A stretch of 64,000 bases of DNA from Selaginella moellendorffii (Eukaryota > Plantae > Lycopodiophyta). Below the pieces are notes generated by a model that saw only the letters and a list, made by a program, of their open reading frames with translations, made no database searches and had not been told where the DNA came from. The stretch lies in the NCBI RefSeq assembly GCF_000143415.4, contig NW_003314306.1, forward strand, positions 776,897-840,896, in the 5' to 3' direction. Made by a program: the position numbers and the translations under genes. Shown here piece by piece: positions 12,734 through 43,794 of this stretch; position 1 is the first letter of the stretch; each line of letters starts with the position of its first letter.

Positions 12734-13430
12734 CAAGAAAAGTTTTGTGATATACCTCTACATTGCGTCTCTCTTCCTGAGAGCTACACTCTGTCGTATA
12801 CACCACCATAAAATCTGAGGAAAAATGGGCTCTATAGTCAGATTGGAATGAGCCGCAACAGCTCGAGAATTTTGACAGATCGGGGCTTCACTCCAGCCAG
12901 TGCACCTAAACCCCACAATTTTTATGGCATCCAGCAGCTCAGTGACAACTCAGCCATATGATCACGGCGATGTTTCTTCCCTTCGAGTAGAAAAACAATT
13001 GGTAGGATTTCGTAAAAGAAACTACCAAAGAAAGGCGCTCGACTTACAAATTCATTCGTACATCGATTAATTGCCTTCCACACACACTTTTTAAAGGCAA
13101 AAAGCCTGTTTTTCCTCTCTTTTTTTCATTCATTTGTAGAGATCTTAAACCAGGTTTGTTCTGTTCACTTTCATCTTTATGGTTACACGAGTTGTTCTGT
13201 TCCCCCTGAAATCGAAAACCACTTCGAAAATATCAGACTAAGCTTTAAAGGCTCCCATCGCTGCCGAAGAATAAAGGTATTCAACTGAACTCAAGGTTTA
13301 TAGATGAAGCACCTCTGACGCCGATACCTGAAAAGCAATTCTAGGAATGACTTATAGAAAACGGACTATAACGTATATGGTGCCGAGTCCAAAATCAGCC
13401 CCTTTGATAACATCATCGGATTTCTGTTCT
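12734..13430. pseudogene. Second scrambled copy of kinase gene fragments
   Basis: Duplicate of 7879-8376, extended by an inverted block (~13205-13415) carrying the DFGLA and YRAPEV exons. Confidence 0.75.
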
Positions 13431-13509
13431 CTTTCTGGATTAGTTTTTGACGAGCCTGCTGGGCTGCAATCTTTCTAGGTTCATTGTGGATTCCTGAATA
13501 ATTCCCGTG

Positions 13510-14406
13510 GTGACATGGACAGGGGACAAGACATATCTGGTGTGAATTTGTGGTTGCCTCAGGAATTTCGACGACTACGACATGCCTCACCATGACAGAT
13601 TTCTCTGGAGAGCATCAAGGCCGAGGGCTTGCTCACCGAGGACGGAGGTGGTCAGGCATCTGGCGGCTAGTTCTTCTCAAGAACCTTGGCGTATGACGAG
13701 CCTCGCCGGAACGGCAAGGTACCCCACTCACAGGATCTTTCCGGCGGTGAAGTATAGCATCTGGGTCGATGGAAAGATGGAGCTGGTCGTGGACCCAATT
13801 CTCATACTTGAGAGGTTTGGAACCTCCACCGTCTCTCTCACCCTTGTTTCTAACTCGTTCGTTCGTTCGTTTGCATAGGCGGGCATAAGTTCGCCTTCGC
13901 TCGACACAAACACCACAAGAGCATTTACGAAGAGGCGGAGGAAGAGATACGCGAGGCCGCTGATAGACAAACACATGGAGATCTACAAGCGCGAAGGCAT
14001 GCAACCATGGAGCAAAGCCAAGCTCCCAGTTCTTAGCGGTAAGTCAGCTCCAATTCTTCCAACGTTCCTCGGAGCAAAGTTCGATATTTCCAGATGTTCC
14101 AGAGGGAGCAGTGATCATCCGCGAGCACACTCCACTCACGAACTTGTCTGCTGCCTGTGGTTCAACGAGGTGAATCGATTCACGCCGCGCGACCAGCTGA
14201 GCTTCGGCTACGTTGTCCACCGATTGAACGGCTCCTTCCCCTTGTTCATGTTCCCAAACTGCGAGTACAACGCGCTCTTCGTCCTCCACAAGCACACGCG
14301 CGAGCACTCGTCCAAGGTGGAATGGGTGAAGACGCTGGACGAGCTCAAGGACGAGAGCATCGCGTTCGAGACGAGGGCCGGGCTGGGCTTGCTCGGGGAT
14401 CGTTGA
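13510..14406 (+). pseudogene. 5'-truncated DUF616 (TOD1/MUCI70-like) gene fragment, copy 1
   Basis: HRIFPAVKYSIWVDGKMELVVDP and WFNEVNRFTPRDQLSF motifs. Small deletions relative to copy 2 and no N-terminus. Confidence 0.8.
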
Positions 14407-14500
14407 CCGCCCGTTGGCCGACCGTTAATCGCAGCCGGAATCCAACGGCTGCGATAACCATATAAAAACGTCTAGGGGGGGATTTCTAGGGTTCTAACAC
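14400..14500 (+). promoter_or_regulatory. Core promoter: AACGG/CCGTT (MSA-like) motifs, TATA box and telo-box-like TAGGGTT
   Basis: CCGTTG, CCGTTA and CCAACGG at 14410-14448, TATAAAAA at 14461, ATG at 14504. Confidence 0.45.
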
Positions 14501-14503
14501 AAA

Positions 14504-16332
14504 ATGGAAGAGGAGGTCGATGACGCTATGTACGAGCGTAACAGGAGAGAGAGAGTGATGAGAGATCCATTCTTTCTGTCAGAGCTAGATCTCATAGTAC
14601 AAGAGCCTAGATCACGCGTGCTGGATGAAGCGAGGCTAGCGCTAGAAAATGTGCCTAGGCCTAGGTATAATGCGTACGCATACGCAAACGCGGTGCATCA
14701 CACGAGTTCTTCGGATGGCAGCAGCACACCAGTGCTCAATCTTTCCGTAATATCGAGTCCAAACGCTTCCGGTGAGGTTTCGAGCAGCTCTGGGGCCAGC
14801 GAGATCGAGGATTCAACCGATTCAGAAGATTCTAGTGAAGACTCTAGCAATTCCGGTACTGTACTATCGACTCAGGGCAGCGATCCGGGCTCATCCAGTG
14901 CCACGCCTTGGATTTCAGGGTATCCGCCGATGGTCGCGAGCTCAAGCGGCGAAAATCCGGACTCCTCCAGCGTAATCTCAGGTCTACTCTCTCGCAGGGA
15001 GGAGCCGATGGCGATATCGATTCCAAGGTCTTCCCGGGAGGGTCCTAGCAGCTCCGGCGCCGTAGGTCTAGGCTCGTCATCGAGCGCCAAAATATCGTCT
15101 CCAGGCGATCCGAGCTCGTCCAGTGCCACGGCAAGCGCTGTTCTTCCAGGTCCGCGCTCATCGAGCACCGCCTCGATTCCAGAGGATCCGAGCTCATCCA
15201 GCGCCGTAATATCGTCTCCAGGGAAGGACCCGAGCTCGTCCGCCGCAGCAAGCTTTCATCTTCCAGGTCCGAGCTCATCGAGCGGGGCAGCCTCGATTCC
15301 AGAGGATCCGAGCTCATCCAGCGCCATAATATCGTCTCTAGGCATGGATCCGAGCTCGTCCGTTGCCACAGCACCAGGTCCGAGCTCATCGAGCGCCGCA
15401 ACCGCGATTCCGAAGGATCCAGGCTCATCCAGCGCGTCTCCAGGCAAGGATCCGAGCTCGTCCATTGCCGCAAGCTATGGTCTTCCGGGTCCGAGCTCAT
15501 CGAACGCCGCAGCCTCGTTTCCAAAGGATCCAAGCCCATCCAACGCTATAATATCGTCTCCAGGCAAGGATCCGAGCTCGTCCATTGCCGCAGCAATTCC
15601 TGGTCCAAGTTCATCCAGCGGCAATCTTCCAGGGAGCGCCTCGACTCCAAGCTCATCCAACGCCATAATAAATCTTCCAGGTCTGAGCGCCGCAACCTCG
15701 CCTCCAGGTAAGGATCCGAGCTCGTTCCAAGCTCTAATCATGACATCTTCCAGGTCTGAGCTTATCCAGGGCCGCAACCTCCGATCCAAGTTCATCTAGC
15801 TCCTCTCCAGGTAACGAACCGAGCCCGTCCAGTTCCACAGCAAGCTCTAATCGTGAGCTTTCCAGGTCCGAGCTCCTCTCCCACAGCAAGCTTTGGTCTT
15901 CCCTCATGGAGCGCTACGTCGACTCCAAAGGCGAGTTCATCATCAAGCGGCTGGGATATCGAGCGGAGCTCCTCCAGCGCGATTCCAAGCTCCTCCGGCA
16001 CGGCTACTCCAAGTAGCATCATCCCGGGTGGATTCGGCCATGGTCCGTCACGCCCTGGCCCGATCGCGAACGGCGGCAAAGGCAAGTGGATACTGATCGC
16101 CAGCAAATCATCCACCGGCGTTTCCAGGATCACCACCCGCGTCGCCACCACCCCATCAGTGCCAGAAGTGCTGTACGTGCTCGAGCGGCTGTACCATCCT
16201 CTAGACATCTTTCGTTCTTTCTGTTTTCCCGGTATGTTCTTCGTCCTCGTTCCCTCGATTGGTCGTTCGCAAGCCCTACCATCAATTGATTGCTGCCCAT
16301 GGCACGGCTATACGCGACGACCAGCCCGGTAA
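14504..16332 (+). CDS. Orphan Ser/Pro-rich low-complexity protein with ~40-aa tandem repeats (PGKDPSSS/PGPSSSS); introns at 15708-15753 and 15811-15865; 3' end uncertain
   Basis: The long ORF 14504-15799 is joined to ORF 15853-16332 by two short canonical introns. A duplicated two-exon-like module follows (~16270-16465 and ~16750-16980). Confidence 0.55.
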
Positions 16333-17225
16333 GCGTGAATTGAAGCATTCCTGATTGTTTTTTGACGCGTTTTTTCGTTCTTCAGTTTCAGCGACCTTTT
16401 TCCTCTTTACCATGGTATTCGTTTGCTATGGTAGCTGGACGGCTTATTTTTCAGCTCCAGGTAAGCTCGGAATGTTTGAATCGCCCCTAGATTTACAGTT
16501 TTTTCATTCTTTTCAGTTTTTACAGTTTTTCGTTACCAATCACTCAATCAACCTCCTACAAACAAACCAAGAGAACTACTGTTCCAGGGAGAGCTTTCTA
16601 CCATCAGCTCCCAATCCCATCTCAGGATTGTTCATCCGAGGCCTACAGTCCACGTCCTGGTGCTCGCTCCTCTAGATCTTTTGTTCTCTTTCTTTCGTCG
16701 CCTTCTTCGTCCTCGCTCTCTCGTTCCGTCGATTGGTCGTTCGCAAGCTCTTCTATCGATTGATCGCTGCCCATGGCTATAAACGCGACGACCACCCCGG
16801 TAAGCTTGACTCTTTGATTGTGTTTTGACACACGTTCTTTCCTTGGACAGCTCTTTGATCTTGGCCATCATTTTCGTTTCTATTTGTGTTTTTTTCCGTT
16901 TTCGAGAGTACGTTACTAAAGAGCAGCTTTTTTCCATCTCATGGTAGCTGGGATGGACCTTCGTCTTCAGCTCCAGGTAAGCTCTTCCGATTTTAAAGCC
17001 TCCCGTCGATTTACAGTCTGTCAGATTAGTCAAGTGCTCGGGCCCTCAACGAACCTAAGGAGAGAACTATTGTTCCTGCGAAGGCAAATCGTTCACTCGA
17101 CCTGCCTCATGATCGAGAGTACTGTTCCAGCGAAAGCAAATCGTTTGTAAGTAGCCATTTACAAATTCGTTTCAAACGTTTACAAGGCAGGCCAGTAGCG
17201 TGACAATCTCCTCAAACTTGACTGC

Positions 17226-19595
17226 TCAGTCGTCCAAGTAATAGTAAGACCCGGTAGCCTTTTGCTCACGATCTTTGATGGAGTCGAGCTTGTTGATCCG
17301 CGGCCTAAAGTTCGTGGGATCACGCCGGAAGGTGATGTCCAGGTGCTGCGCAAAGCGAAAAAGTGGAATCAAATCAGCCATGAACGCCTGGAGAAGGAGA
17401 GAGAAAACGCTACTCACCGAGAGGAACAGGTTCATCCCCGTGAGGAGACTCTGGGGCGAGTTGGCAACGCACTCCACCGACGGTTTTCCTTCGTAGACGA
17501 TGACCCTGTCCGCCAAGTACGTTGCCATGATCAAGTCGTGCTCCACCACGAAGGCCGTCTTCTTGGCGTGGAGGATGAAGCGCTTGATCACCTTGCACGC
17601 CACCAGTCGCTGCTCGGAGTCCAAGTGAGCGCTGGGCTCGTCGATCAGATAGATGTCCGCGGGCTGCCAAGGCAAATGGTTAGATATGCTGCGAGGATAA
17701 GTTCAAGGAAAAGCGCTACTACCTTTCCAAGGCAAAGGCAAATAGCAACGCGCTGGCGCTCTCCACCCGATAAGTTGGCAACTTCCCGGTCCATGAGTGC
17801 CTCAATCTGGAGAGGCTTCATCACGTCCGTGTTGAATTGAGGATGAAAGCACGAGTCCCGGATCTTGGTGTGCAGCAAATGCCGGACCGTGGACTGGGAA
17901 TTGGAGTTGACATGTTGTGGCTTGTATGAGACGTTGAACTCGGGAATTTCTTCGGAGTCACGAGAATCGTCGTCGGATTTTAGTAGCCCAGCCTGAGATT
18001 GGAAGAAACCTTACAGGTGAAAATGGAAATGACTTTGAAAACTTACCAGCATTCTTATGAAAGTGGTCTTTCCGGTTCCATTCTCCCCGAGCATCACAAT
18101 AATCTGTGAGTCTGTGAAGTCCCCCTCCTTGATTTGAAGCTTGAAGCTTCCTTGAGTCCTTGACATGGCAGGATACTTATACCGAGTGTACGCCTGGACT
18201 TCCTCGGCGCTCTCTTGAGCGCTCTCAGCAACCTTGCATTGACATAATCCCCGTTTTAATTGAAAAATTAGTGAAAACAATTCTTACCTTGAATGTGAGG
18301 GACACATCACGGAATCGCACATTTTCCGTAGGAATATATCCAGCGAGGAATACGTTTATGCCTTCCCTCACGGAGAAAGGGAGCGTCACAACGCCATAGG
18401 CACCGGGCTTCCCGTAGAGGCAGCAAATGTAATCAGACAGATAGTCAAGAACACTCAGGTCATGCTCCACGACGATCACATAGCTGCATTGCAAACTCAA
18501 AGTAAGTTGAGGAAAACCAAAAAAGAAAGGAGTTCGTACTTGGTTGGCGTGAGAAGGGACCGAATGACTTGAGCAGCCTTGAGCCTCTGCCGAACATCCA
18601 GAAAGCTGGATGGCTCGTCAAACATGTAGACGTCCGCCTTCTGCACGGCCACCTCGGCTATAGCAAAGCGTTGGAGCTCTCCACCGGACAAATCCTCCAG
18701 ATTTCGGTCCAGGACGTCGATCAAATCAAGATCACGGCAAACATCCTCCATCGCACCTCTTTCATCCTTCCGCGAAAGAGCTTCACCGACGTTGCCTTTG
18801 ATCACCTTAGGAACTTTGTTCACGTCCTGCGTTTTCGTGACCACCTGAGACAGCAGGCTTCGTTAGGAAATCACTAGAACTAGAGTCCTGTCTCCATACC
18901 TTCAAATTATCTTCTACACATCGCAAGAAGTAGTTCTGGAGTTCCGATCCTCTGAAGTATGTCAAGATCTCTTGCCAGTCCGGAGGATTCTACAACGTAA
19001 AGCTGTCAGCTAGGAACTAGGCAAATAGCACAATAAATACCGCAAAGTTCCCCAAGTTGGGCTTGAGGTATCCGTGAAGAACTTTCAAGGCGGTCGTCTT
19101 TCCAATTCCATTCGTCCCAACAAGGCCCAAGACCTGGCCTGGCTTTGGAGTAGGAAGCCTGTTTAAGTGAAGTCAGCACCACCACCCACAAGGCATCCAC
19201 CAAGCAAACCTGTGTAACTTGAAACTGTTCGCTCCATATCGATGTGTGGTTTCTTTGTCCAACTCCCTGGGAAGATTGATGATCTCTATCGCCCGAAATG
19301 GACATTTCTGCCACATACAAGATATGAATAGAAGAAAGAAAAAAAAGGGAAAACGCACTTTCACGCAAATACCACAACCAATGCACAGCTCCTCCGAAAT
19401 GGACGAGATCTTGGATGCTGACGAGACCTCGACGCACAGCTTCCCTGAAAATTCGAATTCATTCTACCATTCGAGAGAGGAGAAGGAAAGCTTGCCTGTT
19501 TTCACCACGGGGCAGCTCTTCTTGCACTCTTGGTTGCACTTCTTGGGCTTGCAACGATCGGAGTTGACGACGGCGATCCTAGTGAGACGACTCAT
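17226..19595 (-). CDS. ABCE1: ABC transporter E family member (RLI/ABCE1 ribosome recycling factor), multi-exon
   Basis: N-terminus [24 protein letters not shown] and CIGCGICVK Fe-S motifs. Two ABC cassettes ([24 protein letters not shown]). C-terminus [10 protein letters not shown]. The first intron has a GC donor. Confidence 0.95.
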
Positions 19596-19624
19596 TGTTA
19601 AAAAGGGAAATGAAGACCTAGTTT

Positions 19625-20260
19625 CGTAAAACCAGCTTTATACTACTTTGGACGGCTCGATACGCGCTCCAGTAAACGGTTGCGATAGGCCCAAACCAAC
19701 GACCCACCCTAAAAGGCTGTTGAGAATGCTTTAGATTATTGCATCCAGCAGCTCAGTGACGACTCAGCCATATGATCGCGGCGGCTACCCGGATGTTTCT
19801 TGTCTTCGAGTATATGGTAGGATTTCGTAAAAGAAACTACCACCTCGACTTACAAGTTCATTCGTACATCGATCAATTGCCTTCCACAGACTGCCATACG
19901 TACCTTTTAAAGGCAAAAAGTCTTGTTTTTCTTCATTCATTTGTACCGATCCAGAGATCTTAAACCAGGTTTGTTATGTTCATTTTCATCTTTATGCTTA
20001 CATGAGTTGTTCCGTTCCAACAGTGATGCTATCAAAGGGGCTGATTTTGGACTCGGCACCATATACGTTGTAGTCCGTTTTTTATAAGTTATTCGTAGAA
20101 TAAAATTATGTTTTTCAGGTATCGGCGTCAGAGGTGCTTCAGGCAGGTACGCAATTGGTATGTCTATAAACCTTGAGTTCCGTTGAGTACCTTTATTCTT
20201 CGGCAGCGAGCCTTTAAAGCTTAGTCTGATATTTTCGAAGTGGTTTTTGATTTCAGGGCT
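19625..20260 (+). pseudogene. Third collapsed copy of the kinase gene, including its upstream region
   Basis: 19627-19692 matches 24560-24630. TTTCTTGTCTTCGAGTATATGGTA, AGAGATCTTAAACCAGG, GCTGATTTTGGACTCG and TTTCAGGTATCGG follow in gene order with large deletions. Confidence 0.8.
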
Positions 20261-20359
20261 CTTTCTGGATTAGTTATTGACGAGCCTGCTGGGCTGCAAT
20301 CTTTCTAGGTTCATTGTGGATTCATGAATAATTCCCGTGGTGACATTCATCCACGGGAC

Positions 20360-21305
20360 TGGGGACAAGACATATCTGGTGTGAATTTGTGGTTGCCTCA
20401 GGAATTTCGACGACGACGACATGCCTCACCATGACTCCTCTCGATAGATTTCTCTGGAGAGCATCAAGGCCGAGGGCTTGCTCACCGAAAACGGAGGTGG
20501 TCAGGCATCTGGCGGCTAGTTCTTCTTGCCGTATGACGAGCCTTGCCGGAACGGCAAGGTACCCAAGCTCCTCACTCACAGGATCTTTCCGGCGGTGAAG
20601 TATAGCATCTGGGACGATGGAAAGATGGAGCTGGTCGTGGACCCGATTCTCATACTTGAGAGGTTTGGAATCTCCATCGTCTCTCTCACCTTGTTTCTAA
20701 TTCTCATACTTGAGAGGTTTGGAACCTCCAGCGTCTCTCTCACCCTCGTTTCTAACTCGTTCGTTCGTTCGTTCGCATAGATATCTCTGGCGAGGCGGGC
20801 ATAAGTTCGCCATCGCTCGACACAAACACCACAAGAGCATTTACGAAGAGGCCGATGCCAACAAGCGGAGGAAGAGATACGCGAGGCAGCTGATAGACAA
20901 ACACATGGAGATCTACAAGCGCGAAGGCATGCAACCATGGAGCAAAGCCAAGCTCCCAGTTCTTAGTGGCCAATTCTTCTTGAGCAAAGTTCACTGTTCT
21001 CCCTCTCTCGATTTTTCCAGATGTTCCAGAGGGAGCAGTGATCATCCGCGAGCACACTCCACTCACGAACTTGTTCTGCTGCCTGTGGTTCAACGAGGTG
21101 AACCGATTCACGCCGCGCGACCAGCTGAGCTTCGGCTACGTTGTCCACTGATTGAACGGCTCCTTCCCCTTGTTCATGTTCCCGAACTGCGAGTACAACG
21201 CGCTCTTCGTCCTCCACAAGCACACACGCGAGCACTCGTCCAAGGTGGAATGGGTGAAGACGCTGGACGAGCTCAAGGACGAGAGCATCGCGTTCGAGAC
21301 GACCG
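20360..21305 (+). pseudogene. 5'-truncated DUF616 (TOD1/MUCI70-like) fragment, copy 2
   Basis: PYDEP.RNGKVPKLLTHRIFP, HKSIYEEADANKRRKRY and HTREHSSKVEW. An exon-end segment is duplicated at ~20699-20745 and there is a frameshift. Confidence 0.8.
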
Positions 21306-21481
21306 GGGCCGTTGACCGGCATGTTGACCAACCGTTGACCAAAAGCCCGAACTTGGATTTAGGGCTGACCTGCAATAGGGCATTTTTTTTTCTGTGGGAT
21401 CCAGCTCTCTCCGACAGTCTTTCCAGCGATCGATCGAGCTTGCGATCTTCATGAGGTGACTTTGTAGATTCTCTCTGGGTG

Positions 21482-22645
21482 ATGGGATCTAGTAGCGAGG
21501 TCTCGGAGGACATCGAGTGGCACTCCCCGGGAGGAGTGCCAGCGGCGGCTGCGCCATCGCCAGCCCCGCCGGAGGAGGCGAAATTGATCGCGCCCATCAA
21601 AGGCAAGCGGAGCTGCGGGATCAGGAAGAGGAATTCGAGCGTGAAAAATCGCAAGGCTGAAGTGGTGGAGGAGGAGCCGGAGGAGAAGAAGTTGAAGAAG
21701 GCGGCGCCAAAGCGGAGCTCGACCAGGGATCGCCACACCAAGGTGGAGGGGCGGGGGCGGAGAATCAGGATGCCGGCGGCGTGCGCCGCCAGGATCTTCC
21801 AGCTCACGCGGGAGCTGGGCAATAAGTCTGAGGGCGAGACCATCGAGTGGCTGCTCAAGCAGGCGGAACCTTCGATCATCAAGGCCACGGGCACAGGTAC
21901 CATCCCGGCGCTCGCCTTCTCAGTGGCGGCGCCGCTGGCCCTCCGCCAGGCCGCCGCCAATTACGTCTCGCCGATCGCCGTCGCCACCCGCTCCAGCCTG
22001 CCGCTGGATTTCGCGGCGCCGCGAGTGGACAACGCTAACGCCACCACCACCACCACCACCACCACCACCACTATCACCACCGAGGGTGGCGGCGGTGGTG
22101 GCGGTGGCGGCGATGAGAACTCCAACGAGAGCCATCGAAGGTACGAGTTCCAAGAGAATGGGGACAGTGGATCCATCGGAGACGATCATGGAGAGGGGAA
22201 CGCCAAGAACTTGCTCACTAGCTTGAAAGATGATCCACGATCTCTCCAATCCAAGCAACAGCAAGCTCTCGACGACCACCACCAGCATGACCAAGAAGAA
22301 CTCGCGATCCATCACCAGCAGCAGCAAATCTCTTGGCCCGTGCCAAACCTGTGGATGCTGCCAGTTCCATCTATGGGTGATCACTCGTGGGCATACACCA
22401 CTTCGACTTCGTGTCCCTCGAGCTTCTCATCGTCGGCGGCGATGATCCAGCAGCAGCTCCAGCGGATGAATGCGAGCAGCCTGATCGAGCTGGGGCCTCT
22501 GGGATCGATGCTGGCGATGCAGCATCACCCGGATCTTTGCGCCCCTGGCAGCGATAACTTCAACCTCTTTGCCGCGACGTACCACCACCATCTCCAACGC
22601 CAAACATATGATCCTCACGTTACTTCACGAGACGATAGCGGCTAG
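21482..22645 (+). CDS. TCP: Class I TCP (PCF-type) transcription factor, single exon
   Basis: [57 protein letters not shown] is a class I TCP domain. Confidence 0.95.
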
Positions 22646-24985: not shown

Positions 24986-25085
24986 NNNNNNNNNNNNNNN
25001 NNNNNNNNNNNNNNNNNNNNNNNNNNNNNNNNNNNNNNNNNNNNNNNNNNNNNNNNNNNNNNNNNNNNNNNNNNNNNNNNNNNNN
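24986..25085. other. Assembly gap (100 N)
   Basis: Run of N. Confidence 1.
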
Positions 25086-27111: not shown

Positions 27112-28833
27112 ATGACACATAAAGAAGACTATAAATCTATGGATCAAACAGAATGCCTTCGTCTAATCAATTCTTGTGGCAATCTTTCACGAGTCCGGGA
27201 AGTTCACTCGATCTTGAAACGCTCCCATGGAAACGCTCTTCTTGGAGATTCCTTTGTTTGTAACAAGCTCATTGAGATGTATGGCAAGTGTGGGAGCCCT
27301 GGCGATGCCAAGTCCGTGTTTGACGAGATGGGCTTCTCGAATTCCATCTCCTGGGGCGTGCTTCTCCTGGCATACACTCGAAATGGCCTCCTGGGCGATG
27401 CCAAACTCCTCTTCGACTCCATGCCTGGCAAGAACATCGTCTGCGCCACGACGATCCTCACTGCGTTTGCGCAATCTGGAGACGTTGCCAGAGCCAAGGA
27501 GGCCTTTGATTCCATGCCTTTGCACAATTTGGTGGCTTGGAATGCGATTCTAAGTGCCTTTGCCAGACATAGGCATTTGGAAATCGCGAAGGCGGTGTTT
27601 GATTCTATGCCGGAGCACGATCTCATATCGTGTACTACACTTCTCACAGCTTATACACAAGATTACTTTCTTCTTCACGCAGTGAAAACGTTTGAAACAA
27701 TGCCAGAAAGAGATATAGTTTCGTGGACGGCAATGTTAACTGCATATGCCGTGTCCGGGAATCTTGAATCTGCGCATGATACTTTTCAAAACATGCCGGA
27801 GCGGAATCTCGTCTCGTGGAACGCCATGTTGGCGGCATATTCGCAAAGCGGGAATCTTAAAGAAGCTAGGAATCTTTATAGAGATGTCCCCGAGACGGAT
27901 CTTGTGACCTGGAATCTCTTGCTCACTCTAGATGCCCAAAGCGGGAACCTGTCACTGGTAAAAGAAACTTTTGACGTGAAAATGCCCCAGCACAATCTGG
28001 TCTCCTGGAACGTAATACTGTCGTCATACTGTCAAGCTACGCGTATCGAAGACGCCAAATGTATTTTTGATTCTATACCATCACTCAACCTCATTTCTTG
28101 GAACACAATGTTGGCAGCATATACTAGAGCAGGGCATCTTGATGATGCTAAGTTCTTGTTTGAGAGAATGCCGCAGAAAGACATTCTATCCTGGACATCT
28201 ATTCTGACTGCTGTTTCTCAAGAGGGTGATTTAGAGTGCTTTGAGTCTGTTTTCTATCGCATGCCAGCCAGAGATTCCTTCGCCTGGGCCACCATGGTTA
28301 TGGCGTACACCCAAAACGGGCATCTTCGCAAAGCAAAATTTTGCTTTGATCGAATTCCAGTGTGGGATATCATCTCCTGGACTTCTGTTCTTGCGAGTTT
28401 TACTCACAAAAGAAACCCCGCAGAGTCTCTACACCTCTTTGGATCGATGGAGATGCTGGATCCTCCAGACCAAGCTTGCTTCACGTCAGTTTTGATCTCT
28501 TGCAGCCACGGAGGCAAGGTTGAGTCGGGAAGATCCTGTTTCCTTTCCATGAGAATGAACTATGGGATCCAACCCACAAGGCAGCATTTTTGCTGCATGG
28601 TGGATCTTCTAGCCAGAGCTGGGCATCTGGTGGAAGCCCAAGAACTCATCACAAACATGCCTTTTGTTCCTGATGCTTTCGACTGGACTTGCTTGCTCTC
28701 GAGCTGTAGAAGCTACAGAGACTTTGATCAAGGTGGCGAAGCTGCGAAACAAGCGATCTCCATGTTTCCAACCGGAGAAGCTGCGTATGTTTTGCTGGCA
28801 GCGAATACCATTCAAGCTCTTCATCCCGGATGA
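27112..28833 (+). CDS. PLS-class PPR protein made mainly of 31-aa SS-type motifs, E-domain C-terminus, no DYW
   Basis: Repeated (N/D)xVSWNxML.AYxxxG units, then HFCCMVDLLARAG and MPFVPD..W..LLSSC. Confidence 0.92.
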   Translation: MTHKEDYKSMDQTECLRLINSCGNLSRVREVHSILKRSHGNALLGDSFVCNKLIEMYGKCGSPGDAKSVFDEMGFSNSISWGVLLLAYTRNGLLGDAKLLFDSMPGKNIVCATTILTAFAQSGDVARAKEAFDSMPLHNLVAWNAILSAFARHRHLEIAKAVFDSMPEHDLISCTTLLTAYTQDYFLLHAVKTFETMPERDIVSWTAMLTAYAVSGNLESAHDTFQNMPERNLVSWNAMLAAYSQSGNLKEARNLYRDVPETDLVTWNLLLTLDAQSGNLSLVKETFDVKMPQHNLVSWNVILSSYCQATRIEDAKCIFDSIPSLNLISWNTMLAAYTRAGHLDDAKFLFERMPQKDILSWTSILTAVSQEGDLECFESVFYRMPARDSFAWATMVMAYTQNGHLRKAKFCFDRIPVWDIISWTSVLASFTHKRNPAESLHLFGSMEMLDPPDQACFTSVLISCSHGGKVESGRSCFLSMRMNYGIQPTRQHFCCMVDLLARAGHLVEAQELITNMPFVPDAFDWTCLLSSCRSYRDFDQGGEAAKQAISMFPTGEAAYVLLAANTIQALHPG

Positions 28834-28859: not shown

Positions 28860-31141
28860 CTACCAGTACTCACCACAGGAGCAAGTTCCATCCCTGTAAA
28901 CATGGAGCCTGCTTGCGTCCCGGCAGACAATGCTCCGCCCCTCCACCCTCGAGATAAACCCAAGAACTTCATGACACTCGTCGCAAACTCTCAGATTCTT
29001 GCTGATCCGGATCGTCGTTCCAGGAGCCGTGTTGACGAGCGCGCAAGCCACAGCGATCCTCTCGCAGTGCCCGCACAGCGACACCATCTTCTCGCCACCG
29101 CCACCCTCGAAACCCCGAAGAACATCCCGCAACTTCGCCGCGATCTCCAGACTTTGGGGATGGTTCTCGAGATCCCCGGCCATGAAGCAGTGAACTATAC
29201 CAGATCTGTCGCTCCACCAGCATCGCCCAGCTTGTTTCCAGTCGCCGCAATCCCTCCGGAGCCACTCCACTCGAAGCTGCTCGCTCCACATCCCTGTGCT
29301 CGCGTACAAGCTCGACATCAAGAGATAGACCGCCGTGTCTCGCCGATCCAACCGAATCAAGCTCTCAAACGCGATCCTTCCCACGGCCACATTTTTCCAC
29401 TTCTTACACGCCGCCAGGAGCGTCCTCCAAGTCACTGTGCTTGGCTCGAAAGGCATGGCTTGGATCAAAGCGAGAGCGTCGTCTACCCGGTTTGCTCTGC
29501 CGCGGATATCAACCATGCAGTGGTAGTGCTCGATGCTTGGAGTGACCGCAAACTTGGAGCTCATCGATCCAAACCAAGCCTCGCCAGTCTCCACTAAACC
29601 AGCGTGGCTGCAAGCGCTGAGTATGCACAGCAGCGTGATCCCGTCAACTTCCAACCCCTCGTCCACCATTCCATGGAAGAGATCAAACACTCCTTTGGTA
29701 TCGCCCTGGCGGCCATAGCCAAAGAGAAGCGCCGTCCAAGTTACCGAGTCTCGGGACGAGAGTGACTCAAAGATCCGGTGTGATTCATCCATGCTTCCAC
29801 AGCGAGAGTGGAAATCAAGCACGCAGCTCGCGAGCCCTGCCTCGTTTTCCAGACCAGTCCGGCAAACTTCAGCGTATATCTTCTTCCCCGCGTCGAGAGC
29901 TACGAGGATCTCACAAGCTTTGAGCCCAGCGGCGAAAGTTCTCGCGTCTGGAGCGTATCCTTCGAGCTTCATGCGCGAGAAGAGCTCAAGGGCGGCATCG
30001 CCATGGCCGTTCTCGGCGTAGCCGAGGATGAGAGCGTTCCAGGAGACCAAACTTCTCGAAGCCATCCTCTCGAAGACACCCCGAGCATCGATCACGCTCC
30101 CACACTTGCAGTACATATCCACGAGCGTGTTGGAGACGAAGGTGGTCATCTCCCTGCCGAGGATCATCTCGGCCTTGCGGTGGATCTCTCTCCCTCTCTC
30201 GAGGCTCAAAACTTTCACGACTCTCCCGTCGATCTGCTCGCCGGTTTCCTTCTCGGCCAGATTCGAGCAAGCCTTGAGCGCCGCGAGGAAAGTTCTAGCG
30301 TTTGAAACGCAGCCTCTTTGTTCCAATCCTTTCAGCAAATCCATAGCCGCGACTTCTTCTCCATTTTCGGCAAGTACCAGCATCAAAGCGTTGCAAGAGA
30401 CCAGATCGTGCTGAGGCATGCTCGCGAAAACTCTCCGAGCGTCGCCCAAGCTCCCACACTTGGAGTAGAAGGTGACGAGAGCGCTCGCCAAGAACAAGCT
30501 CGAGCATCCATCCTTCACAGCCCCGTCATGGACCTCCATCCCCTTCTCCAGAGCTCTAACTTTCACGATCCTTCCATCGGCCAGCTTCTTCCCAGGCTCT
30601 CTAGCGGTCAGGCTCGAACAAGCTCTCAATCCAGCCAGGTAGCTCGCGGCATCTAGACGAATCCCGGAAGAAGTCCTGAAACTCGAGAAGAGCTTGATCG
30701 CGAGCTCTGGCTCATCGTTGTCTACGTAGCCATTGATGAGCGCTGTCCAGGCGATCACGTCGTGGTTCTCCATCTCGTCGAATGCTCGCTGCGCTTCCAC
30801 CATGCTGCCACACTTGGCGTACATATCGATCATCGTGTTCGCGACTACCGCGCATTTCTTCGCTGAGTCACCAATCCCGGAAGCCTCCATCTCCGCGTGT
30901 GCTCTCCTCGCCCTTTGCAAGTCCCTGGACATGGCGCAGCCCTTGAGCGTGGCGATGAGCATGGAGATCTTGGTCCTCTCCTTTCGAATCGCGGCGGCCT
31001 GGTCACTTGCAAGGAGATGGAGGTGAGAGATCGAGGATTTCTTGTAGATAGCACTTACATTGTGAATTGGAGGCCATCGCCAGGGAGAGACGCGCCCTCA
31101 TGGATCCATCGCAAGCGAATGGGCTGTGCCCATCGACGCAT
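28860..31141 (-). CDS. PLS-DYW PPR RNA-editing factor, with an upstream exon encoding a likely organellar transit peptide
   Basis: HCERIA...KNLRVCDECH...CSCGEYW. Exon 1 (MRRWAQPIRLRW...) splices in frame via GTAAGT..TTGCAAG. Confidence 0.9.
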
Positions 31142-39279: not shown

Positions 39280-39351
39280 ATCAGAGTGGCGCAGCGGAAG
39301 CGTGGTGGGCCCATAACCCACAGGTCGGAGGATCGAAACCTCTCTCTGATA
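39280..39351 (+). tRNA. trnM: Initiator tRNA-Met (CAT)
   Basis: ATCAGAGTGGCGCAGCGGAAGCGTGGTGGGCCCATAACCCACAGG...ATCGAAA...CTCTGATA, with an A1:U72 pair and initiator-type T-loop. Confidence 0.95.
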
Positions 39352-40963: not shown

Positions 40964-43629
40964 CTACCAGTAGCCTCCACAGCAGCACCTCCCATCCTCG
41001 AAAACATGGAACCTGTTCGTCTCCCTGCACAGAATCCGCCGCTCTTCTATCCGGGAGATCATGCAAGTCGCCCTGTGGCAGTCGTCGCAAGTTCTCAGGT
41101 TCTTCACGATCCGGACTGTCGCCCCCGGCGCAGTGTTGATAAGAGCACAGGCGATGGCGAGCCTCTCGCTATGCCCGCACAGGACATCCTCCTTGTCCTC
41201 GTCGGACGTGCTTCGCAGCACACTCCCCACGTCCGCGACGTATCCTTGCTCTTTCATGGCCACCAGGAGATCGTCCAGCTTCGCCCGGATCTCGTCAATC
41301 TGTGCGTGGCTAGAATCACCAGCCGAGAACTTATGCACCACTCCCGCGCTGTCCGTCCACCAGCTGCGACCCTGTCCAGGCTTTCTCCAAGCTCCAGCAC
41401 TGATCCTCATTGTCTCGATCCTGGCGTGCTCCTCCCACATTCCCAGGCTCCAGTATATCTGTTCCATCAGGATATAGACTCCAAACTCGGAGTCGTCCAG
41501 CTTCAGTAGATTCGCGAAAGCGAGCTCGCCAAGCACCACATTCTTCCACTTCCGGCAAGCACCGAGGACCGTCCTCCATGTCACCGCAGTCGGCTCGAAA
41601 GGCATCGATCGTATGAGTTGCACGGCAGCGTCCAGCTGGTTGGCACGGCAAAGTATGTCGAGCATGCAGTGGTGGTGCTCGAAGCCGGGAGAGACGCCAT
41701 ATCTGGAAGCCATCGAGCTGAAGAGACCCCGGCCTTTGCCCACGAGGCCGGCATAGCTGCAAACCGCGAGCACGCACAGCAAAGTCACGCTGTCCGCCTT
41801 GAAGCCTTCGTCCAGTATCTCGTGAAAGAGATGGAACACCTGGCTTGCCTCGCCTTGGCGGCTGTATCCTGCTATAAGCGTCGTCCATAGCACAATGTCC
41901 TTGGCGATGGAAACGTCGAAGACTCGTTGAGCAGCGTCCAGGCTCCCGCATCTCGCCAATGCGTCGACCATGGTGTTGGATAGAATCACGTCATTCTCGT
42001 AGCCACCTCTACAGACTTCACCATAGATGACCTTCGCGTTCTCGAGTGCCAAAACGCTGCCGCATGCTTTCAACACGGCCGCAAAGGTCCGAGCGTCGGG
42101 CTCGCATCCTCGAGGTCTCATACGCCGGAAGAGCTCCAAAGCCATCTCGCCTTCACCGTTCTCGGCGTATCCCAGCAGTAGCGTTGTCCACGAGACTGAT
42201 GTCTGGGAGGGAATGCTGTCGAAGACACGGTGAGCATCGGCCAAACTCCCACACTTCGCGTACAAGTCCACCAGCGTGTTGATGAAGAAGTAGTCTGCGC
42301 AGCCGCTTCCCTCGGCCTGCGAGTGAATCCGCATCCCCTTCTTCAGGCACTCGAGCTTCACAAGCTTCCCGTCGACTAGCTCGCCTTGCTCTTTCGCAGC
42401 CAGCTCGTTGATAGCATTTAGCGCCGCAACGAAAGTCCTGGCGTCTGGTGCGCAAGCTTCCGGCCTCATGCTCGAGTAAACCGCTAGAGCCATTTCACCA
42501 TCGCCATTCTCGACGTATCCCAGTATCAGCGACGTCCAGGAAACCACGCTGTGGCACGACATCCGGGAAAACACGCGGTGAGCGTCGGCCATGCTTCCAC
42601 ACTTGGAGTACATGTCCACAAGTGAGTTTGAGACGAACGTGTGTGTGTCACAGCCGAGCTTGGACGCTTCGCGGTGCACGGCCATTCCCTTTTCAAGTGA
42701 TTCCAGCTTCACCATCTTTCCAGTGACCAGCCTCCCTTGTTCTTTCGCTGCCAGCGTCATGCAAGCCTTGAGCGCCGCGACGCAAGTGAGGGCGTTTGGC
42801 TGGCAGCACTGCGCGATCATCCGGAAGAAATGCTCGAGAGCCACATCTCCTTCCCCGTTCTCAGCGTAGCCCAGTATCAAAGTCGTCCAGGACACCACGT
42901 CGTGGTGAGACATCCTGGAGAAGATCCTGCTAGCTTCTGTCATGTGGCCACACTTCGCGTAGAAATCCACGAGCGTGCTCGCGACGAAGATATCCGACTC
43001 CCAGCCGGCCTTGGAAGCCTGCGTGTGGATCGCGATCCCTTTGCCGAGAGACGCGATCTTCACAAGTCTTCCATCTGCTTGAGCGGTCCCTTCCTCTTTC
43101 CCGGCCAAGCGGATGCAAGCTTTGAGAGCAGCGATGTAGCTTCCACCGTTTGGAGAGCAGCCGCTAGACTCCATCCTCGAGAAGAGCTTGAGAGCAGCGT
43201 CTTCTTCTCCCTGTGACGCATAGCCCAGTAGCAGGGAGTTCCAGGAGACCACGTCTCGCGACTGGATCCTATCGAACACCCGGCGAGCCTCCACCAAGCT
43301 CCCACACTTGGCGTACATGTTTACCAGGCTGTTTGCCACGAAAACGTTGGAATCGTAGCCCCTTTCCATGGCCTGCGCGTGAACTCTCTTCCCCCTCTCC
43401 AGATTCTTGGCGCTCGCGCACGATCGCAATGCCGCCAGCACCGAGAAGACGCTGCTCGCTTCCGCCTTGTCGTGCCGAGAGCCAACCACGATTTCACATA
43501 CCGCGGCATTCTGCAAGAAAAATCGCTCGGATCGAATCTCGGACCGGAAATCCTCACACTTACATGATAGAATCGCAATGCGATCCAGCGCCAGCTCCTG
43601 CGTGATGAGCGCCTGGAGAGATAGCGCAT
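40964..43629 (-). CDS. PLS-DYW PPR RNA-editing factor, with exon 1 encoding a likely mitochondrial presequence
   Basis: HSERLA...KNLRTCDDCH...CCCGGYW. MRYLSRRSSRRSWRWIALRFYH|GTAAGT..TTGCAG|NAAVC splices in frame. Confidence 0.92.
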
Positions 43630-43794
43630 TTCGCGCGAGATAGAAACGAAACAAACGTTTCCTCCATAGCCACGAAGAGCCCTAGATTTGGTGCGAATAT
43701 CCTCTAGCTATCCAACGGCGAGGATGGGGTCCATATAATCTTCTTTCTCCCTGCATGGTTAGGGCTAGGTTTAGGGTTTGCTGAGAGGGATCCG

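Follow-up and report, generated by a model that had tools for sequence, protein, structure and literature searches.

The window analysed here, a stretch of 64,000 nt of Selaginella moellendorffii DNA (contig NW_003314306.1, positions 776,897 to 840,896), contains a nuclear gene of this lycophyte for a serine-rich repeat protein, whose coding tandem array includes two intron-like segments. Read without splicing, the gene is a plus-strand open reading frame (ORF) of 431 codons, from an ATG at 14504 to a TAG at 15797-15799, and a second plus-strand ORF, in another frame, extends to 16332. The original prediction held that both segments are spliceosomal introns born from units of the array. Our analysis suggests, with moderate confidence, that the coding array yielded a young spliceosomal intron through one intronization, and that this intron was then copied by block duplication within the array. 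The features concerned are listed below, with a caret marking the boundary of a repeat unit or a putative splice site.

14504..15707, plus strand: exon 1, 401 codons plus one base, taken from the ORF; 100% identical to residues 1-401 of the RefSeq protein.
15060..16010, plus strand: tandem array, 30-48 nt sub-units B, C and A in super-units of 111-120 nt, recognized by Tandem Repeats Finder (TRF), repeat families and core spacing.
15105..15149, plus strand: A1, an in-frame unit of 45 nt, which reads ccag^GCGATC...TCTTCCAG^gtc; acceptor-like site intact, donor position poor.
15222..15266, plus strand: A2, 45 nt; ccag^GGAAGG...TCTTCCAG^gtc; neither GT nor GC at the donor position.
15342..15377, plus strand: A3, 36 nt; ctag^GCATGG...AGCACCAG^gtc.
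15444..15488, plus strand: A4, 45 nt; ccag^GCAAGG, a good GC-type donor; ends TCTTCCGG, without AG.
15564..15602, plus strand: A5, 39 nt; ccag^GCAAGG; ends AATTCCTG, without AG.
15708..15753, plus strand: putative intron 1, 46-nt form; cag^GTAAGG...CTCTAATC...CTTCCAG^gt; phase 1; the acceptor at 15753 is a candidate only.
15708..15769, plus strand: putative intron 1, 62-nt form, as used in RefSeq isoform X2; alternative acceptor TTATCCAG^gg, 16 nt beyond 15753.
15754..15810, plus strand: exon 2, 57 nt, a B and a C unit; repeat-frame reading GLSLSRAATSDPSSSSSSP after removal of the 46-nt intron.
15797..15799, plus strand: TAG closing the unspliced 431-codon ORF, from the ORF listing.
15811..15865, plus strand: putative intron 2, 55 nt; cag^GTAACG...CTCTAATC...TTTCCAG^gt; phase 1 in the model that removes both segments (46 and 55 nt); both boundaries present in RefSeq X2.
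15866..16332, plus strand: exon 3; serine-rich frame (codons from 15868) open to a TAA at 16330-16332.

Exon 1 runs for 1.2 kb without introns and encodes a unique N-terminus (approximately residues 1-75), followed by serine-rich sequence and the tandem array. Each sub-unit of the array carries a TCCGAGCTCATC-like core that is read as DPSSS, and the 16-nt core GGATCCGAGCTCRTCC was matched 12 times across the window where 0.03 matches were expected, every match falling within this gene. Three sub-unit types follow one another in the order B-C-A: type B reads GTCCGAGCTCATCGAGCGCC..., type C reads ...AAGGATCCGAGCTCATCCAGCGCC...TCTCCAG and type A reads G[C/G]AAGGATCCGAGCTCGTCC...TCTTCCAG. TRF returned periods of 111-120 across 15077-15663. 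As originally described, the coding A units share the pattern ccag^G(G/C)AAGGA(C/T)CCGAGCTCGTCC...CTTCC(A/G)G^GTCCGAG and are kept in frame: all five (45, 45, 36, 45 and 39 nt) have lengths that are multiples of 3, and every one is translated. Because 21 of the 23 core-to-core spacings are multiples of 3, the array has been held in frame through many insertions and deletions. The remaining two spacings, 40 and 49 nt, each start from a core located inside one of the intron-like segments, and the frame-breaking lesions are restricted to the 3' halves of these two GT..AG units, 3' of the core, at an insertion common to both; the exonic units after each removed segment return to the DPSSS frame. 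Coding of the repeat on the minus strand was considered and rejected, the longest minus-strand ORF (164 aa) lying inside the repeat and the plus-strand ORF possessing an ATG, a unique N-terminus and an annotation.

The two segments were recovered as first reported, 46 nt at 15708-15753 and 55 nt at 15811-15865, each with a GT donor and a CTAAT motif and neither a multiple of 3 in length (both are 1 mod 3). They sit at the A position of the last two super-units, and 15754-15865 forms a full B-C-A super-unit, with B and C as exon 2 and A as intron 2. Alignment of both with the coding A units starts at the first base that follows CAG^ and continues through the final base ahead of ^GT, with 78-89% identity to A1-A5 at aligned positions. 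Intron 1 retains the core as GGATCCGAGCTCGTTC, one mismatch from the coding consensus, and intron 2 aligns over its full length with A1 and A2, apart from an insertion of 7 nt and from 3 nt located at the donor or mid-unit. Because this homology runs from boundary to boundary and the DPSSS core is retained, an origin of the segments from coding repeat units can be read from the sequence, and the case that they derive from such units, with the source units lying alongside, appears solid.

In their signals, both segments resemble U2-type introns. At 15708 the donor is cag^GTAAGG and at 15811 it is cag^GTAACG, both near the AG^GTAAG consensus. In intron 1, CTAAT lies at 15734-15738 and places the branch A at 15737, 16 nt before the AG of 15753 (CTTCCAG); in intron 2 it lies at 15847-15851 and places the branch A at 15850, 15 nt before the AG of TTTCCAG. 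Donor, branch motif and pyrimidine-rich CAG acceptor occur together in both frame-breaking units, whereas each of the five in-frame units lacks the combination. Each coding A unit lacks at least one requirement for splicing, which, in only five units, may reflect either chance or selection against splicing.

The direction from coding sequence to intron is favoured because the segments keep the DPSSS core common to A, B and C units. Five sister units in frame would fit the same coding ancestry, the ancestral absence of the intron being judged from these sister units and not from orthologues. Had the change run the other way, expansion of the array would have copied an old intron together with its exons, and the A units upstream would be exonized copies of that intron. 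Tandem duplication of an exon-intron block is known (TOUCH3, as cited in PMC4974935), and all A units have intron-like ends. However, the A units and introns share the DPSSS core with B and C units, which are never intronic, a core that an intron has no reason to carry, and five independent exonizations would be needed, each a multiple of 3 and free of stops, making the reverse course highly improbable.

Three derived characters are common to both segments and absent from all five coding units: the GT donor, AAGCTCTAATC(A/G)TGA, and an insertion of 7-8 nt located between ...ATC and TTCCAG. The two also share a AAGCTCTAATCRTGA stretch and a CTAATC branch motif, and CTAATC corresponds to the TTCATC of A2 via substitutions. 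The B unit before each segment begins GTCTGAGC, whereas in the complete super-units upstream the B units start with GTCCGAGC or GTCCGCGC; a single nearer unit reads GTCCAAGT. Over 45 aligned positions, the segments are 89% identical to each other, at least as high as the identity of either to any coding unit. Because three derived characters are shared within approximately 50 nt, a single birth, followed by duplication of a block comprising the GTCTGAGC unit and the intron (or by gene conversion), seems likelier than two births. The original proposal thus survives in its core, intron birth from coding units, through the boundary-to-boundary homology, but its two separate births are the less parsimonious account. 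Two independent intronizations, one per unit, would fit the difference in length (46 versus 55 nt) and at several positions, as well as the resemblance of the middle of intron 2 to A1 and A2 and of the first 18 nt of intron 1 to A4 and A5; set against the shared GT donor, the AAGCTCTAATCRTGA stretch with its 7-8 nt insertion (absent from the five coding units) and the preceding GTCTGAGC unit, they are improbable.

A single intronization would have started from a 45-nt A unit bounded on both sides by CAG^G, with a pyrimidine-rich end ...TCTTCCAG^GT, which is intron-like except for its donor. A point substitution may then have converted CAG^GC(AAGG) or CAG^GG to CAG^GTAAG, and further substitutions TTCATC to the branch-like CTAATC, while the insertion of 7-8 nt would have made the unit frame-breaking, after which the repeats further downstream would stay in the DPSSS frame only through splicing. 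A block made up of a GTCTGAGC-type B unit plus the intron would subsequently have been duplicated within the array, giving two segments that have since diverged to 46 and 55 nt; we infer this order of mutations. Duplicated CAG^G proto-splice sites, to which the birth was first attributed, account for the acceptor, where CAG^GT pre-exists, but the donor GT needs a change from CAG^GC or CAG^GG. Because the repeat supplies only the acceptor CAG^GT and the donor GT needs a point change, the proposed mechanism combines the Rogers tandem-duplication model with intronization.

Units with GC donors, suggested as possible intermediates, do exist, at 15444 (A4) and 15564 (A5). A1 and A2 keep the CAG acceptor, but A4 and A5 end in CGG and CTG, without AG, and for that reason cannot be removed as units; they are plausible mutational steps and not functional intermediates. 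Disarming takes different forms across the array, with good GC donors where the AG is lost, intact AGs where the donor is dead, and one unit that is too short. We raise only tentatively the possibility that the array keeps the steps from exon to intron side by side (donor GG to GC to GT; acceptor CGG or CTG to CAG; branch TTCATC to CTAATC; and the insertion), with selection against splicing of the differently disarmed coding units and the frame-broken units kept spliceable. If true, this series would be a natural experiment on the minimal needs of a 50-nt plant intron.

Removal of both segments gave, as predicted, one continuous frame: by local translation it is open for 575 codons, ends at 16332 and reads ...SPPGLSLSRAATSDPSSSSSSPGPSSSPTAS..., and the serine-rich frame stays open for 155 codons beyond intron 2. 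The form that retains the segments is disrupted, both segments being 1 mod 3 and the unspliced frame stopping at 15797-15799. In a collection of 5.8 billion clusters, the sole matching protein was XP_024541360.1 / XP_024541479.1, 'flocculation protein FLO11-like isoform X2', of 491 aa, which is the exact translation of 14504-15707 + 15770-15810 + 15866-16096. The X2 model shares the 15708 donor and the two boundaries of 15811-15865 with the original prediction, but its first intron ends at 15769, not at 15753, so that the 46-nt acceptor itself is not part of the RefSeq model. In X2, exon 2 is reduced to 15770-15810 and read in another frame (PQPPIQVHLAPLQ), and because 117 nt are removed in total, the tail (PQPPIQVHLAPLQVRAPLPQQ...) lies outside the repeat frame, with a stop at 16094-16096. 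In exon 2, the B unit has GCTTATCCAG^GG (acceptor 15762-15769) at the place of GCTCATCGAGCG in its sister units, changes that created the pyrimidine-rich acceptor of isoform X2. Three products are predicted accordingly by acceptor: 15753 leads to the repeat frame and 575 aa, 15769 to 491 aa with a frame-shifted tail, and retention of both segments to 431 aa. The 'X2' label is present at two loci and implies a further isoform. Numbered isoforms in the NCBI pipeline are called from transcript alignments, and some RNA support for the X2 model is therefore likely. Use of the donor at 15708 and of the intron at 15811-15865 is supported indirectly, through that model; we infer actual splicing, and use of the 46-nt acceptor.

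As a local standard we used the neighbouring gene for ABCE1 (RNase L inhibitor), which lies on the minus strand at 17229-19637 and has 10 introns, its exons being anchored on conserved peptides; an unsupervised ORF-bridging scan for more local introns produced hundreds of false candidates and was dropped in favour of the ABCE1 set. The ABCE1 introns measured 51, 51, 51, 51, 55, 56, 55, 54, 59 and 72 nt, with a GC fraction of 0.29-0.49, a T fraction of 0.29-0.55 and donors that include GTAAGA, GTAAGT and GTGAGT; in those with a recognizable CTAAC or CTGAC, the motif lay 16-18 nt before the AG. The first of them (19495-19445) is a GC-AG intron with the donor cag^GCAAGC, confirmed by the conserved CPVVKTGK^LCVEV junction, and ccag^GCAAGG of A4 and A5 shares this donor type. 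Against this standard, intron 2 is typical in geometry, its 55 nt taken as the modal length at the locus, and the 62-nt form of intron 1 lies within the ABCE1 range of 51-72 nt. According to PMC6157073, the intron-length distribution of S. moellendorffii clusters with fungi, sharply unlike other land plants. Composition is less typical: neither segment is U-rich and GC-poor relative to exons in the manner of plant introns. The GC fractions of the segments (0.48 and 0.55) fall only slightly short of the 0.59-0.64 of the coding units, the local introns having 0.29-0.49, a composition between exon and intron that is expected of a young intron and equally of a non-intron.

The gene itself is an orphan, two word searches having returned its own RefSeq entry alone, and neither of its ORFs matches any Pfam family. 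Its N-terminus (MEEEVDDAMYERNRRE...) is acidic and basic and is not a signal peptide. Features of a FLO11-like flocculin (a Flo11 domain, secretory and glycosylphosphatidylinositol (GPI) signals) were not found, with no Pfam match and no signal peptide, and the RefSeq name 'FLO11-like' mirrors serine-rich composition only. The product is a lineage-specific and probably disordered protein. A codon-usage log-odds score trained on local genes, uninformative within the repeat, gave 0.004 per codon for the serine-rich frame over 16011-16332, versus -0.27 and -0.20 for the other frames, a weak preference.

Several observations weigh against a young intron present in two spliced copies. At 46 nt, intron 1 falls below all 10 ABCE1 introns (51-72 nt; a small sample), and the T fractions of the segments (0.26 and 0.20) are below that of every local intron (0.29-0.55). 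The X2 model makes no use of the 46-nt acceptor and departs from the repeat frame after the introns, and isoform X1 was not found by word searches with exon 1 (residues 1-110 and 1-401) among proteins of 220-859 aa. Exon 3 in the serine-rich frame gave 0 hits in a HMMER search of 1.84 billion representatives, and conservation cannot confirm its frame. Finally, 53 single GT..AG pairs spanning 40-200 nt also yield ORFs of at least 480 codons, and because of this, ORF rescue by itself is weak evidence for splicing.

Much of this evidence would suit an account in which nothing is spliced, a frame-breaking insertion having arisen in one unit that was then duplicated, so that the gene ends at the TAG at 15799 (431 aa) or decays and the RefSeq introns are bridges made by a gene finder. 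Such an account could draw on the orphan status of the gene and the empty search with exon 3, a RefSeq tail outside the repeat frame, segments that are T-poor and GC-rich for introns, the many GT-AG pairs able to rescue the ORF and the weak codon signal beyond the array. It leaves without explanation, however, the joint presence of a consensus donor, a branch motif at the local distance and a CAG acceptor in precisely the two units that break the frame and never in the five that keep it, and the return of the exon 2 and exon 3 units to the DPSSS frame once the segments are removed; numbered RefSeq isoforms at two loci are, in addition, usually a sign of transcript evidence. We consider the absence of splicing unlikely.

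Removal of 158 nt (15708-15865) alone or of 62 nt (15708-15769) alone also restores the serine-rich frame. The main event might accordingly be a single 158-nt intron that skips the 57-nt exon 2, or a 62-nt intron with intron 2 retained. Both would give long ORFs, of 556 and 588 codons; a length of 62 nt lies within the local 51-72 nt, with 46 nt below and 158 nt above it, and intron retention is given as the commonest type of alternative splicing in S. moellendorffii (PMC5310277). But RefSeq X2 includes exon 2 (from 15770) and removes intron 2, and word searches of the collection found no protein of 556 or 588 aa with the exon 1 N-terminus, so that neither event is at all probable as the main one. 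The preferred reading remains one intronization in the coding array followed by duplication of the intron-bearing block.

The surroundings of the gene include a possible core promoter:

14461..14467, plus strand: TATAAAA motif, 37 nt upstream of the ATG at 14504, read from the sequence.

The upstream TOD1/MUCI70-like gene (an ORF matching Pfam PF04765) stops at 14404-14406, and the TATAAAA motif lies approximately 55 nt further on. A 1.2-kb direct repeat at 13138-14374 and 19953-21302, in pieces 92-99% identical and with a spacing of approximately 6.8-6.9 kb, brackets the serine-rich gene and ABCE1. It contains the 3' end of a TOD1/MUCI70 glycosyltransferase-like gene (Pfam PF04765), its similarity ends at 14374 and 21302, ahead of the serine-rich ATG, and the second copy stops a short way upstream of an ORF for a TCP transcription factor (21479-22645). 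In or beside the 1.2-kb copies lies a 78-nt inverted repeat pair (13338-13415 and 20024-20101, 94% complementary). A tandem duplication with a unit of approximately 480 nt (16195-16670 and 16671-17160) overlaps and follows the end of the serine-rich frame. Its first 150 nt or so are approximately 88% identical and include GCTGCCCATGGC...ACGCGACGACCA(G/C)CCCG^GTAAGC, and a second conserved piece reads CAGCTCCAG^GTAAGCTC. By their sequence, these pieces look like small exons with donors, either exons of the 3' untranslated region of the serine-rich gene or those of a separate small gene; the duplication had no Pfam match. Further along the window, Pfam scans of large ORFs identified PPR and PPR-DYW genes, the TCP factor and an LRR receptor-like gene. 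Three PPR genes are intronless (27112-28833 on the plus strand, 28860-30962 and 40964-43654 on the minus strand), two of the three with E/E+/DYW deaminase domains, and intronless PPR/DYW genes are typical of the RNA-editing-rich Selaginella genome. A tRNA-Met (CAT) gene was called at 39280-39351 on the plus strand by both ARAGORN and Rfam, and 100 N at 24986-25085 mark an assembly gap.

Recent intron gains with an identifiable source are rare (PMC4974935), and few are from plants. Within 800 bp, this one gene combines the source units, a possible series of mutations and an alternative acceptor, and the introns of its genome stand at a sharp minimum length. Should the junctions be borne out by RNA data, it would provide a compact model locus, in which point changes in a minigene could show what turns a 45-nt coding unit into an intron, and it would show a tandem array multiplying an existing intron. 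Its value is that of a clean example and test bed and not of a new principle.

Among known systems, the closest are those that follow the tandem-duplication model of Rogers (1989), by which intron creation in ATP2A1 was reproduced experimentally (2011; PMC3265369). As in those cases, the Selaginella segments share homology with exonic sequence that neighbours them in the gene, with the putative intron a duplicated exonic sequence that ends on a repeated CAG^G boundary and adjoins copies that were not intronized. The model has GT and AG both derive from the two copies of one duplicated AGGT, whereas the donor positions of the coding units are CAG^GC or CAG^GG, so that the repeat would provide the acceptor CAG^GT only and the donor would have come by point change; the unit also gained a frame-breaking insertion, the peptide is not simply unchanged, and splicing is a prediction. 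In SPOG_01682 and in SOCG_00815, both of fission yeast, introns arose from 24-bp AGGT coding repeats (Zhu & Niu 2013, cited in PMC4974935), and the Selaginella source is likewise a tandem repeat that is short and coding. Catania & Lynch 2008 argued that mRNA surveillance has a part in intronization, with nonsense-mediated decay (NMD) working in favour of removing a segment that carries a stop (PMC2586383). Here too, coding sequence with latent splice sites would have become an intron, and the retained form has a premature stop (TAG 15797) against the long frame of the spliced form. Irimia et al. in 2008 reportedly described intronization of coding sequence; unlike such cases, the ancestral lack of an intron in Selaginella is deduced from sister repeat units, not orthologues. 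Alternatively spliced human introns are said to have arisen from tandem arrays (Zhuo et al. 2007), and the two systems would be alike in that units with splice-site-like ends yield new, often alternative introns in repeat-rich coding exons, though in the lycophyte, with its minimal introns of approximately 51-60 nt, one repeat unit would make one whole intron. In plants, a tandem duplication spanning an intron-exon boundary gave the potato RdRp gene a new intron (Ma et al. 2016; PMC4974935), which parallels the present gene in that the source is identifiable within the same gene; most signals of the potato intron came from a pre-existing intron, whereas no older intron is involved in the Selaginella gene. 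Intron birth from duplicated exonic sequence is an established mechanism, to which this locus adds a lycophyte example with unusually well-preserved source units.

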